Source of the DNA: Wallemia ichthyophaga EXF-994
Taxonomy: Eukaryota > Fungi > Basidiomycota
NCBI RefSeq assembly: GCF_000400465.1
Contig: NW_008806291.1
Span: forward strand, 195,680-227,679
Direction of reading: 5' to 3'
DNA: 32,000 nucleotides
The notes beneath the pieces were generated by a model, which did not search any database, was not told the origin of the DNA, and was given only the letters and a program-made list of their open reading frames with translations. The translations under genes were made by a program, and so were the position numbers. Shown piece after piece: positions 17,315 to 21,602 of this stretch; position 1 is the first letter of the stretch, and every line of letters begins with the position of its first letter.

Positions 17315-18618
17315 TCAATGCTGTGCATCGCCGAGCGTCTTCCACAGCGCCTGCGTTACGCCCTGTACCGTTTCCGGTCTGAGTACGCTCGGATTAGCAG
17401 ACTGGGATTTACCGAACTGGATGACCTGTTTAACGAGCTGATTCATTTGAGCGTGGTTGATGTTGAGTGTGTTGGGTGGGTTGGCAGTCGTTGCGTTGCT
17501 ACTCTGCCGCTGCTTGGGCTGAAGAAACGCATCACTCTCCAACAACTCGGGTATAGTCATCCGTCGCCTTGCATCTCGATTAAGACAGCTCTTCATTGTT
17601 CGCAACACATCCTCGTCTACGCGCACAGCCAAGTCCTGTCGATGTACCGGCTCGTATGTCCCGTCCGCCTTGCGTTGTGCTGGTTCCACGGGGATTGAAT
17701 AAGTGGGAAAGTCTATAGCCACGCTCTGGTCCGGGATCGCCGCCAACTTCTTATGTATGTTCTGGTAGTGGTAAAATGGTGGATGGGAGTAAATCATCTG
17801 GTATAGGATGCAGCCCAGTGACCACACATCCGATGGGCGACCTAGCTGTGAGAGTGTATTAGTAATGTGTGATCGAGTGAGTTTGTCATTCCCACCTTTA
17901 AACCTCGTTTATTGCCAAGTCCACTCGGATTCGTGATGGCTTCCGGCGACATGTAGTTGATGGTGCCCACCTGCGAATCGCGCTGTATATTGGCCGTATC
18001 ATTCGGAATAGCCTTCGCAATCCCAAAGTCAATTAGCTTCAATGAACCCTTTACGAGAACGAAGTTGGCTGGTTTGAGGTCTGAGTGTACAATTGCTTCC
18101 TCGTGTATCGCGTGCACGGCTCGCAACATCTGCTCCCAGTACACACCGACGAAATTCATATTCAAACGTTTTCCCTGCTGCTCGTAGAGGAGGCGGGCGA
18201 AATCTATCTCACCGCACTCCATTCGCATGAGTAGCTTACCGCCCATTCTCTCCCAGTCCCATAACTTGATTATACGGTCATTACCCCGCAGACGCTGGAG
18301 GAGAGATATCTCATTGAGATACCCCGTCACCGTTTCTGGATCACACTTGTCGAGACGAACTCGCTTTATGGCGTGAAGCTCATTCTGTGTGCTGAGCACA
18401 CGGTACACTTTCGACGAACCTCCCTTGCCCAGCTCGTCGAGACGGAGATAGGGTATGCCGTTGACTGTGAGGTAACTGGGTGGACGCATCCCGAGGTAGG
18501 GGTTGGGTTGAGACCAGGACATTTGCTGCTGAGGGACGTATGAAGGGGGCTGAAGGGGAACTACTGCGTCTGTGAGGGGTGGAGGTGGGTGTTGAGAGTT
18601 TTGTTGTTGTTGAGAGTT

Positions 18619-18655
<37 letters not shown>

Positions 18656-20025
18656 CGCTGCTGTTCACGTTGTTGCTGCTCGTCAGCTTTTCGATCTTCT
18701 TCAGCTTTTCGATCTTCTTCAACTTTCCGATCTTCTTCAACTTTCCGCTCTTCTTCAGCTTTTCGATTTTCCTCAATTTTCCGCTCTTCTTCAACTCTCC
18801 TCTCCTCTTCAAGTTTCCTCTCCATTTCAGCTTTGCGCTCTTCTTCAGCTTTGCGCTGCTCATTAGACCTGCGCTGCTCTTCTCTTAACTTTTCTCGCCG
18901 CACCTCGCGTTCCTTTTCTCGAGTCTTCTCGAGCTCTAATGGGCGGTGCGAGGGGTGAATTTCACGCGACTCTTCGCGCTCGTCCTTCTCGACTCTCTCC
19001 GCCCTCTCAGACTTGTGAAATCTATCAGATCTATAAGTCGATCGCTCGTCCTCCTCATTTCTGATATCCGAGCGCAAAAGAGAGCGGGAAAGGGTAGGGG
19101 GAGTGTTATTGTGAGTATCACGCGCGCTATTCTCGCCTGTCGAGAGACCAGAGTAGCTAGAGTAGCTATGAGCGTTGCGAGCGAGGGGTGGTCTGTCTAT
19201 TGATCTTGGTGAATGAGTGGAGTGAGTGGAGTGAGTGGAGTGTGGGGAGTTGGCTGAGTATGAGTGCGGTGAGTAGCTAGTAGACTGGTATGCACCGCCG
19301 TCACTCGCGCTACCACTGCCACTGCGACTCAAACTAACATCCTCTTGGTCATTTCCACTGGGAATTCCATTTCTATTTGCACCACTCACGCCCCCGCCCA
19401 CACTGCCATCACCCTGCAACATCTGGATCATTGCCGGCGTCCACTTCTTGTCTGGTCGCTGGGGACGCTGAGTGCCAGCAGCCGGTCGCCTGCGTCTTAC
19501 GGTAGAGGTAGCAGTGCGCGGTTGAGGCTGGCTGTCGACACCCAAATTGGGAGTTTCCGGAACAAGACGGAGAGGGTGGTTGGATAAGGGAGTATCGGAG
19601 GGTGGCGATTCGCGCGTGAGGGTGTGTGTCGTGGCTGGTGTTTGCTGTGGTTGCTGGACGCTGCGTTTGAAATCAGGTGGTGTTGCTCTGCGTGGGAGGT
19701 TCGCGGTTGGGCGATTAGTGAGGTCCTTAAGTTCCTTGTGGGAGTTTGCAGTGCCCTTGTGAGGATCGCCGGTATCACCCACATCACCCACATCCACGCC
19801 ATCCACGCCGCCAATCTTGGCATTCGCGAGCGCGTTCCGCGACGCACTGGCGAGAAGAGCAGGATCGAAGCTGTCGTCATCATCGCTATCGTCGCTGTCG
19901 AGAAGGCGCTGATCGAGGTTGTGACGTTTAAGGAATTCCTGTGTGCCGGGGGAGAGGGAGGGGAGGTGTGGATGCGGGGCATGGCTGTGTTTATCTGGCG
20001 TAGCTGGCGTATCGGGCGTATCCAT
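17315..20025 (-). CDS. MPS1: Spindle-checkpoint dual-specificity kinase Mps1/TTK
   Basis: Kinase motifs LGKGGSSKVY, AIKRV, YLNEISLL, MECGEIDF, VHSDLKPANF, LIDFGIAKAIPNDTANIQRDSQVGTINYMSPEA. Intron 17846-17895 joins GLK|LGRPSDVWSLGCILYQ. The N-terminus is long and low-complexity. Confidence 0.93.
18601..18655 (-). repeat. (CAA)12 polyglutamine microsatellite plus adjacent CAA runs within MPS1
   Basis: (TTG)12 at 18619-18654 on the + strand, translated as Q12 then NSQQQQNSQ. Confidence 0.95.
18685..18850 (-). repeat. About nine imperfect 18-nt repeats encoding EE(E/D/N)RK(A/V/I/L) charged hexapeptides in MPS1
   Basis: Translation reads AEEERKAEMERKLEEERRVEEERKIEENRKAEEERKVEEDRKVEEDRKAEEDRKA. 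Confidence 0.9.
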
Positions 20026-20159: not shown

Positions 20160-20880
20160 TCAACCGAGCACCCCCTTAAAAGCATCAGTGACGCGCTTTA
20201 TATCGTACATATTCAACACATATCCGTCGCTACGCGTGAGGTGACCACCATGACGCGCGAGACGGCTGCAATTGGGGCTTTTGAGGAGGTGAGAGTTTAG
20301 CAGATGAGCGGGTGGGCTAGAAACGCGGTCTATGCATCCAGGGACTATCTTTGGCGGGCCACCATCCACCACTATAAGCAGGCTGTTTGGTTCGAGGAGG
20401 ATCGGCGTGGCTGAGACATCTGTTTGAGCTACGAGATGAGTACCCAGTGTGAATGTGGCTGTCGTCGATTTGACACCCTGCGCGCACCCCTGGCCCGACT
20501 GGATAGCGTAGAGTTCTGCGTAGTTGGGATGCACTGCTGTGCACTCCTCTATGCGCTGGTAGAGCGTATCCATCCAAGCCGGGGTGCTGCTTTGTATCAG
20601 TTTGCCGGTTCGGGTGAGTTGACCACCTGTTTGATTAGAAATTGAGCAAATTTCGCAAATAAAGGAGAATAAACGGGAACACACCTATAAAGAGGTGCCT
20701 GTATCACTTTTTAATGTAATTTGGGCTTGGAAGTAGCGCTACCCACTTGTAACCGTCGTTGTACCGCCAGGATCGCTCAGTGATTGCTGAAATAGCCTCG
20801 AGAAGACCATCTAAATCGTGTCTGCTGAGCAAGTCCGGGATGTAAATCAGCCGATCAGAAACGAAATTGGCGGTGTTCAT
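20160..20880 (-). CDS. ALKBH6-like AlkB-family protein lacking catalytic Fe(II)/2OG ligands
   Basis: Exons 20880-20747, 20698-20685 (14 nt) and 20626-20160 give 204 aa: MNTANFVSDRLIYIPDLLSR..W..GYK|HLFI|GGQLTRTGKLI...TATFTLGTH..ILLEPNSLLIV..LLNSHLL..GGHLTRS. These segments parallel ALKBH6 [20 protein letters not shown] and LLLEPRSLLVL. Confidence 0.75.
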
Positions 20881-20907
20881 CGATGTTGGTGTACAAAACT
20901 TGGCTGC

Positions 20908-20941
20908 GGCTGAGAGTGGCTGAGAGTGGCTGAGAGTGGCT
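20908..20941. repeat. Three perfect copies of the decamer TGAGAGTGGC in the spacer between prefoldin 3 and the ALKBH6-like gene
   Basis: Read directly at 20911-20940, preceded by GGC. Confidence 0.95.
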
Positions 20942-20945
20942 ACTC

Positions 20946-21602
20946 TTACTCCTTCTCCTGCTGCTGCTCGACCTCCCTCTTCTCTCTCCTCCTCTTGACA
21001 TCAAAGTTCCAGATCCTGGCTGTATTGACGTCGGTGATAGTTGTTTGTTCCCTGATGAATTCCAAATCTTCATTGCACTGCTCGTACGAAACACCAGCCA
21101 GCTTCTCCTTCTTCTCGAGGAGCGCTATAGCCTCTGGTATTGTATAGCTGAGCATTGTATTTGCCTGTGTTTGCATATCAGTAGACGCATAAGGCTAACA
21201 CACCACCCACACCCAACCACAGGTACACCACGTCGCTCTTGTCCAGCTCAGCCTCCGCGTAAAGCGTGTCGTGCAGCTCAAACAGCGTTTTTGTCTTTGT
21301 GCCGTCCTCATTCGCGCCGTGCAAATGCCTAACCATGGACAGCGTCTTGGAGATGTCCGGTATCTTGACATCGAGGGATTTCTTCTTTTGTAGAAGTGAT
21401 ATTTCCATGTATCTGTACTTGGATGCCATCTCCTGGAACTGCTTCAACGCGCTGTCCACCTCTGCGCCCTCTCCACCGATATATTCCACTACGTCGGCCT
21501 GTTTTCCATTTTTGATGAGATATCCACAGCGTATACGCTCTAACCCACCACAAACGGCGCTGCCGGAATGTTCCGCGGATTCGTTGAGACTGATTCGCTC
21601 AT
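20946..21602 (-). CDS. PAC10: Prefoldin subunit 3 (Pac10/Gim2/VBP1)
   Basis: Spliced MSESVSTNPRNIPAAPFV|ADVVEYIG..QFQEMASKYRYME..KIPDISKTL..FELHDTLYAEA..VYLWLG|ANTMLSYTIPEAIALL..DLEFIREQTTITDVNTARIWNFDVKRRR. Confidence 0.95.

Follow-up and report, generated by a model that had tools for sequence, protein, structure and literature searches.

Within the 2-oxoglutarate oxygenases, catalytically dead proteins are known from other families, such as the JmjC-domain proteins, a different branch of the superfamily in which, for example, JARID2 and Schizosaccharomyces pombe Epe1 lack the iron ligands. No report of a conserved dead member of the AlkB family was found in open-access full text. Human ALKBH6 (PDB entries 7VJS and 7VJV), the closest described relative of the protein considered here, has a solved structure, and its substrate and physiological role are not firmly established (PMC8892091). 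In that structure the metal is bound by H114, D116 and H182, and 2-oxoglutarate is contacted by N103, Y105, R218 and S220 (PMC8892091). In this work we analyzed a minus-strand gene at positions 20160–20880 of a 32,000-nucleotide (nt) stretch of the genome of the halophilic basidiomycete Wallemia ichthyophaga EXF-994 (contig NW_008806291.1). The whole stretch is referred to below as the window, and all coordinates are window positions. The gene is probably an ALKBH6-derived pseudo-dioxygenase that has been kept by selection for a non-catalytic binding role. A candidate pseudo-dioxygenase had been proposed at this position from the DNA alone (the original prediction), and the proposal is now supported by homology, by ligand replacement and by purifying selection in five lineages. 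The likeness to JARID2 and Epe1 would be one of concept, namely an oxygenase fold that is selected after loss of the cofactor ligands and serves as a binding or scaffolding module.

To compare the 204-amino-acid (aa) product with ALKBH6, we relied on a set of five orthologues consisting of the window protein and its counterparts in four Wallemia-like lineages. When 1.84 billion representative proteins were scanned with HMMER (phmmer), only four partial relatives were returned besides the window protein itself, all of which trace to the prefoldin-linked loci L001–L005, and contig look-up gave the four further lineages: L002 and L003 from Logan assemblies, and L004/L005 and L001 from ENA metagenomes. 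The four relatives found in this full scan include no sequence that bridges to canonical ALKBH6. Word-indexed protein searches, with either the single protein or the five-sequence profile, returned only the protein itself and fragments, and a metagenome scan with the Wallemia profile gave zero matches. With human ALKBH6 as the protein query, the best 120 of 1621 matches were all vertebrate. The orthologues are 33–60% identical to the window protein, with L001 the lowest at 33%, and 50 alignment columns are invariant across all five.

The relationship to ALKBH6 emerges clearly when profiles are compared. In a search of the PDB with the five-orthologue profile, human ALKBH6 (7vjs) ranked first (E = 0.012), and AlkB-family demethylases also occupied ranks 2, 3 and 5. 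Alignment with hhalign gave a probability of 95.8% against human ALKBH6 (E = 8.4e-9, 178 columns) and of 96.7% when the target was a profile built from 15 vertebrate ALKBH6 sequences (E = 3.7e-10, score 69.6). This second alignment has 181 collinear columns that span query residues 10–198 and ALKBH6 residues 22–232. As controls we used 100 column-shuffled versions of the Wallemia alignment, which scored 14.5 on average (standard deviation 2.6, maximum 21.5), and the reversed alignment, which scored 14.7; the real score lies more than 20 standard deviations above the shuffled ones. MAFFT independently yielded the same collinear alignment. In it NYAELYAIQSGQG pairs gap-free with NHVLVNQYLPGEG, so that the ungapped stretch claimed in the original prediction holds. 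At the level of sequence, the similarity to ALKBH6 is far beyond chance.

Over approximately 180 collinear residues, the two proteins are 23–26% identical. They share the first strand (YVPDFI in ALKBH6 versus YIPDLL), the W-x11-GG spacing of the lid, the LLEPRSLL strand, the LG(S/T)H motif and, toward the C terminus, L-x-R followed by a strand and a helix. The motifs YIPDF, W-x11-GG, N-x-x-L-x-x-x-x-x-G-x-G, T-x-x-L-G-x-H, LLEPxSLL, xG, D, N and L-x-R occur in the same order and with the same spacing as in ALKBH6, and the residues common to the Wallemia-like and ALKBH6 groups include W38, K45, G50-G51, H113, L126, S131-L132, G146, D149, N160, L179 and R181. The lid (Flip1 and Flip2) is formed by residues 33–65, which align with human A45–P76 with one single-residue gap and conserve W38 (= W50), K45 (= K57) and G50-G51 (= G62-G63). 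ALKBH2, ALKBH3, ALKBH5, ALKBH8, Escherichia coli AlkB and S. pombe Ofd2 have the jelly-roll core that is predicted for the Wallemia protein, together with an N-terminal lid. However, they are weaker matches than ALKBH6, and all of them, unlike the Wallemia protein, keep the HxD...H triad and the 2-oxoglutarate-binding arginine.

In contrast to these shared features, the Wallemia-like protein lacks all of the metal ligands and 2-oxoglutarate contacts of human ALKBH6 as well as R224, and five residues are missing from its HxD loop. It also has no counterpart of the Flip3 insert of ALKBH6 (E139–P158), and its isoelectric point (pI) is near neutral, compared with 8.55 for ALKBH6. In the alignment, every one of these contacts, together with R224, is replaced in 5/5 orthologues, mostly by conserved residues. 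The residues found in the Wallemia-like orthologues are as follows:

N103 (2-oxoglutarate): Y or F
Y105 (2-oxoglutarate): I, V or L
H114 (metal): G or S
D116 (metal): K, invariant
H182 (metal): P in four lineages, K in L001
R218 (2-oxoglutarate): G, invariant
S220 (2-oxoglutarate): V, I or L
R224 (RxxxxxR motif): Y, invariant

In the window, the corresponding codons are located at:

20502–20510, minus strand: codons Y89-A90-I91, which stand in for N103 and Y105
20469–20477, minus strand: codons G100-V101-K102, which stand in for H114-x-D116; K102 is invariant
20337–20342, minus strand: codons P145-G146, which stand in for H182-G183; the distal metal-binding histidine is lost
20205–20225, minus strand: codons G184-Y-V186-L-N-M-Y190, which stand in for R218-V-S220-L-T-I-R224; G184 and Y190 are invariant

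These assignments bear out most of what had been read from the sequence initially. The predicted changes of H to G and D to K with a deletion of about five residues correspond to H114 → G100, D116 → K102 and the shortened loop, and the alignment agrees with the conversion of RVSLTIR into GYVLNMY. For the remaining segment, said to have changed from LLHGI to PPKIV, the loss of the histidine stands and the pairing does not, since LLHGI aligns with IVPGC (H182 → P145, with G183 equivalent to the invariant G146). Within the W. ichthyophaga segment G94–T104 there is not a single His, Asp or Glu, and in the five-orthologue alignment no conserved His, Asp or Glu lies at or beside the former triad positions. 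A metal site rebuilt in place, which would speak against a pseudo-dioxygenase, was therefore not seen there; a site elsewhere in the protein may exist.

We also examined the fold by structure prediction. When ALKBH6 rows were included in its input alignment, AlphaFold2 produced a model with a predicted local distance difference test score (pLDDT) of 79.6, a predicted template modeling score (pTM) of 0.79 and the expected order of strands and helices. When this model was compared with the PDB using Foldseek, ALKBH6 (7vjs) was the first match (E = 4e-10, template modeling (TM) score 0.59), followed by ALKBH3, ALKBH2, ALKBH8, ALKBH5, Ofd2 and AlkB (E = 6e-6 to 3e-4, TM score 0.46–0.54). The AlkB fold presupposed by the original prediction is thus matched by profile–profile alignment (95.8–96.7%), and ALKBH6 is the top PDB match both by sequence profile and by Foldseek. 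The least confident parts of the model are the two former metal-ligand loops, residues 91–100 and 141–150, with the lowest values at residues 145–147.

Several observations weigh against an ALKBH6-derived binding protein: (i) The Pfam model PF13532 (2OG-FeII_Oxy_2) has no match in any of the five orthologues at E values up to 10, and Pfam searches with both candidate gene models gave no relevant match. The profile searches that had been suggested as a check gave a clear profile–profile match to ALKBH6 and none to the Pfam family model. (ii) With the single sequence as query, phmmer against the PDB finds ALKBH6 at E = 0.26 only. (iii) AlphaFold2 run from Wallemia-like sequences alone gives a pLDDT of 38.7, which is unusable. 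Because the good model depends on the ALKBH6 rows, the fold match is partly circular, and the modeled structure is consistent with, rather than independent of, the assumed homology. (iv) The pI values of 6.4–7.8 are near neutral and lend no special support to general nucleic-acid binding. (v) The invariant residues H46, H113, E87, E128, D137 and D149 may, to judge from the alignment, build a new site.

Points (i) and (iii), together with the 1.84 billion-representative phmmer scan that found only four partial relatives, all from L001–L005, would be expected if the resemblance to ALKBH6 were spurious and the gene were an unrelated, lineage-specific orphan. We consider this extremely unlikely, since the hhalign score of 69.6 comes from a full-length, collinear alignment and far exceeds the shuffled controls, four of the top five PDB chains found with the profile (ranks 1, 2, 3 and 5) belong to the AlkB family, and the motifs follow ALKBH6 in both order and spacing.

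The last point bears on whether the protein could still be an enzyme, with the scaffold refitted around another active site or cofactor (formed, for example, by H46, H113, E87, D137 and D149) or used for metal-independent chemistry. Several His, Asp and Glu residues are indeed invariant in the five orthologues, H113 is invariant in vertebrate ALKBH6 as well (as H132), and the replacements at the cofactor site show conservation instead of random change, a pattern that a new ligand pocket could also produce. However, none of the invariant His, Asp and Glu residues is at a triad position, the canonical 2-oxoglutarate pocket is lined by hydrophobic and aromatic residues in every lineage, and confidence in the model is lowest for the two loops that once carried the metal ligands. 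To our knowledge there is also no precedent for an AlkB-family member that catalyzes without the HxD...H triad, which we count against a refitted enzyme. Taken together, we regard continued catalysis as improbable.

The proposed model of the gene for this probable pseudo-dioxygenase holds. Splicing of three minus-strand exons (20880–20747, 20698–20685 and 20626–20160) gives 204 aa without an internal stop, and the product is 100% identical to the annotated EXF-994 hypothetical protein J056_001834 (XP_009269737.1) and to proteins of other strains. The stop-free three-exon model with canonical splice sites is thus reproduced as originally drawn. Its parts are:

20747–20880, minus strand: exon 1, 134 nt, with the ATG at 20880; residues 1–44 and 2 nt of codon 45
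20699–20746, minus strand: intron 1, 48 nt, GTGGGT...ACAG (GT..AG)
20685–20698, minus strand: microexon, 14 nt, GCACCTCTTTATAG; finishes K45, encodes H46-L-F-I49 and begins G50
20627–20684, minus strand: intron 2, 58 nt, GTGTGT...TTCTAATCAAACAG (GT..AG)
20160–20626, minus strand: exon 3, 467 nt including the TGA stop at 20160–20162; residues 50–204

Exon 1 encodes the conserved first strand, DRLIYIPD, and the lid (Flip1) segment ITERSWRY. It is conserved in L001, L002, L003 and L004, where the GT donor again follows ..TACAA or ..GTAAA. Exon 3 encodes the predicted jelly-roll core, or double-stranded β-helix (DSBH), with the degenerate cofactor site. The mean intron length of the W. ichthyophaga genome is 61 bp (PMC3849046), so the 48- and 58-nt introns fit the genome. 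A prokaryote-style list of open reading frames (ORFs) shows just a GTG-started fragment of 174 aa (20160–20684), as stated at the outset, and a 58-aa ORF in exon 1.

Comparison of the orthologous loci settles the status of the 14-nt microexon, which had been part of the original proposal. Intron 1 is found at the identical position in all four loci (43–59 nt). In L002, L003 and L004 the same microexon, reading K-H-Q-(F/L)-I-G, is flanked by canonical splice sites, and the counterparts of intron 2 measure 45–50 nt. L001 has no intron 2 and reads contiguously as KHKYFGGQL, and this comparison proves directly that the microexon codes for protein in the proposed frame. K45 and H46 are invariant in the five orthologues. 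An alternative in-frame model with two exons, a 58-nt intron (GTAGCG..TATAG) and a 220-aa product was rejected, as L001 reads the microexon contiguously and L002–L004 keep the 14-nt exon.

The same loci bear on selection. With the gene built separately for each locus, the ALKBH6-like frames are open throughout in all orthologues (199–207 aa). In pairwise comparisons between lineages, the proportion of synonymous differences (pS) is 0.72–0.89, i.e., saturated, and that of nonsynonymous differences (pN) is 0.21–0.48. Identity by codon position is 0.43–0.72 at the first, 0.61–0.84 at the second and 0.28–0.38, near random, at the third position. The residues that now occupy the former catalytic sites are likewise conserved or invariant, among them K102, G184 and Y190. 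From the saturated pS, the ranking of codon positions (second above first, and both far above third) and the invariant columns, it follows at the level of these alignments that loss of the cofactor site is old and common to all five lineages and was followed by long purifying selection. The gene nevertheless evolves fast: the L001 protein is 33% identical to the window protein, and the adjacent prefoldin exon appears, by eye, to be much better conserved.

Loss of all catalytic residues and the lack of a Pfam match are also what one would expect of a recently decayed ALKBH6 pseudogene, whose frame would then be open by chance. The probability of this is close to negligible. Five lineages with saturated synonymous sites keep 199–207-aa frames, splice sites and replacement residues, and the sequence of the microexon is coding throughout. 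Moreover, K102, G184 and Y190 are retained where catalytic residues used to be, and second codon positions are 61–84% identical while third positions are near random. The GC content of the loci, which spans 30–53%, and the protein identities of 33–60% exclude contaminants or mis-assemblies of one genome as the source of the five loci.

L001 is a 998-nt ENA metagenome contig with 30% GC (very AT-rich) that is deeply divergent and keeps the prefoldin/ALKBH6-like arrangement. It widens the ALKBH6-like family beyond the Wallemia species represented among the sequence matches.

The protein most probably arose from ALKBH6, a branch of the AlkB Fe(II)/2-oxoglutarate dioxygenases, and its 204 residues have kept the nucleotide-recognition lid and, as modeled, the jelly-roll scaffold. 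Canonical binding of Fe(II) and 2-oxoglutarate is predicted from the replacements to be lost, and the protein would then not be an oxidative demethylase. The former pocket would be lined by the conserved hydrophobic and aromatic side chains of Y89, I91, V186 and Y190. The invariant K102 would sit where the metal-binding aspartate was. A possible partner for it is E87, also invariant, whose side chain should point into the pocket from the strand that carries Y89 and I91.

Binding would involve the well-conserved lid (W38, Y40, K45, H46, G50-G51-Q52-L53, L59 and Q61) and also the minor-sheet/C-terminal loop (D137, P140-P141, G146, D149-R150, P155 and L159-N160). Because the lid and this loop are the best-conserved surfaces, the selected activity is most likely binding of a ligand or partner instead of catalysis, as far as the pattern of conservation can tell. 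The partner could be the normal ALKBH6 target, a nucleic acid or nucleotide, or it could be a protein. The combination of a rebuilt cofactor site with a lid and scaffold under selection would amount to a natural experiment that points to a non-catalytic activity of the scaffold. Annotation by domain models overlooks such derivatives, and this one, to which Pfam assigns no domain, is annotated merely as a hypothetical protein. The genome paper for W. ichthyophaga counts four PF13532 (AlkB-like) proteins (Table S1, PMC3849046), and the ALKBH6-like protein, which does not match PF13532, would fall outside that count.

A more tentative proposal, which we consider possible but rather unlikely, is that Wallemiomycetes have no ALKBH6 orthologue other than this dead protein. 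Its role would be that of a reader or adaptor working through the lid, with a possible link to the prefoldin chaperone by co-expression with prefoldin subunit 3 from a conserved transcription unit, either bicistronic or overlapping. If this were true, the ALKBH6 function kept in Wallemiomycetes would need no oxygenase chemistry, and the gene would represent a natural separation-of-function allele for ALKBH6.

The link to prefoldin arises from the position of the gene, which lies directly behind the gene for prefoldin subunit 3:

20881–20945, minus strand: spacer of 65 nt from the prefoldin subunit 3 stop codon (20946–20948) to the ATG at 20880

On the same strand, the distance from the prefoldin-3 stop codon to the ATG is 65 nt in the window, 18 nt in L002, 30 nt in L003, 52 nt in L004 and 17 nt in L001. 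The gene order in L002 and L003 is prefoldin, ALKBH6-like gene and protein kinase, and prefoldin is immediately upstream in L004/L005 and L001 as well. Same-strand adjacency with a conserved layout and a very short spacer, the pattern by which read-through pairs are recognized, is present in five lineages. Spacers of 17–65 nt are too short for a separate terminator and promoter, so transcription of the ALKBH6-like gene would start inside the prefoldin gene or proceed on a shared read-through transcript. The arrangement suggests that expression of the two genes is coupled, through an internal promoter or a bicistronic transcript.

Polycistronic and read-through transcripts are known in other basidiomycetes, mainly Agaricomycetes; Wallemiomycetes were outside that study (Gordon et al. 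2015, PMC4503453). The short spacing behind prefoldin-3 provides a concrete locus at which transcription may be bicistronic or overlapping, in a class of basidiomycetes that branched early. In a metagenome scan with the vertebrate ALKBH6 profile, 33 loci were found, and tblastn detected prefoldin-3 in the flanks of none of them (0/33).

Such close spacing raises the question of whether the true product could be a fusion with prefoldin-3 rather than a free 204-aa protein. Models of 371 aa exist in other W. ichthyophaga strains (P0002 and P0004), several strain annotations using a 125-nt intron that joins prefoldin-3 to residue 20. In the window an in-frame intron of this length is possible at 20825–20949 on the minus strand; its GTAAGA donor at 20949 is strong, and its CAG acceptor directly precedes 20824. 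It would, however, cost the protein residues 1–19 and with them the DRLIYIPD strand, which all orthologues and ALKBH6 conserve. The prefoldin tails of L001–L004 end differently and have no comparable donor, and the window, L002 and L003 share the conserved ATG context CAAC(G/A)(A/T)CGATGAAC. A fusion as the true product is therefore very unlikely, and as the main form it was rejected as a predictor artefact that deletes a conserved strand by means of a donor that is not conserved.

More than half of the window spacer consists of a perfect tandem repeat of 10 nt × 3.4 at 20908–20941 (GGCTGAGAGT on the plus strand). The repeat is not found in the spacers of the other lineages and accounts for the longer W. 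ichthyophaga spacer.

With regard to expression, the protein sequence is absent from the table of differentially expressed genes, which uses GME identifiers (PMC3849046 supplement). A candidate entry in Additional file 5 of the same paper, GME4070_g, has the length of the coding sequence (615 nt) and values of ~159 and ~106 reads per kilobase per million (RPKM) at 10% and 30% NaCl, respectively; its identifier is not mappable to the ALKBH6-like gene (PMC3849046).

Downstream of the ALKBH6-like gene, a protein kinase gene has its first large exon at 17842–20025 (minus strand), and 134 nt separate its ATG from the stop codon of the ALKBH6-like gene. We take this kinase, from its sequence rather than from a family search, to be MPS1/TTK-like. 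The catalytic domain starts at the C-terminal end of the ORF, and the N-terminal region is long and disordered, with a polyglutamine run and an 18-nt × 9.7 repeat (18683–18857) that encodes units of the EEERK(V/A)E type.

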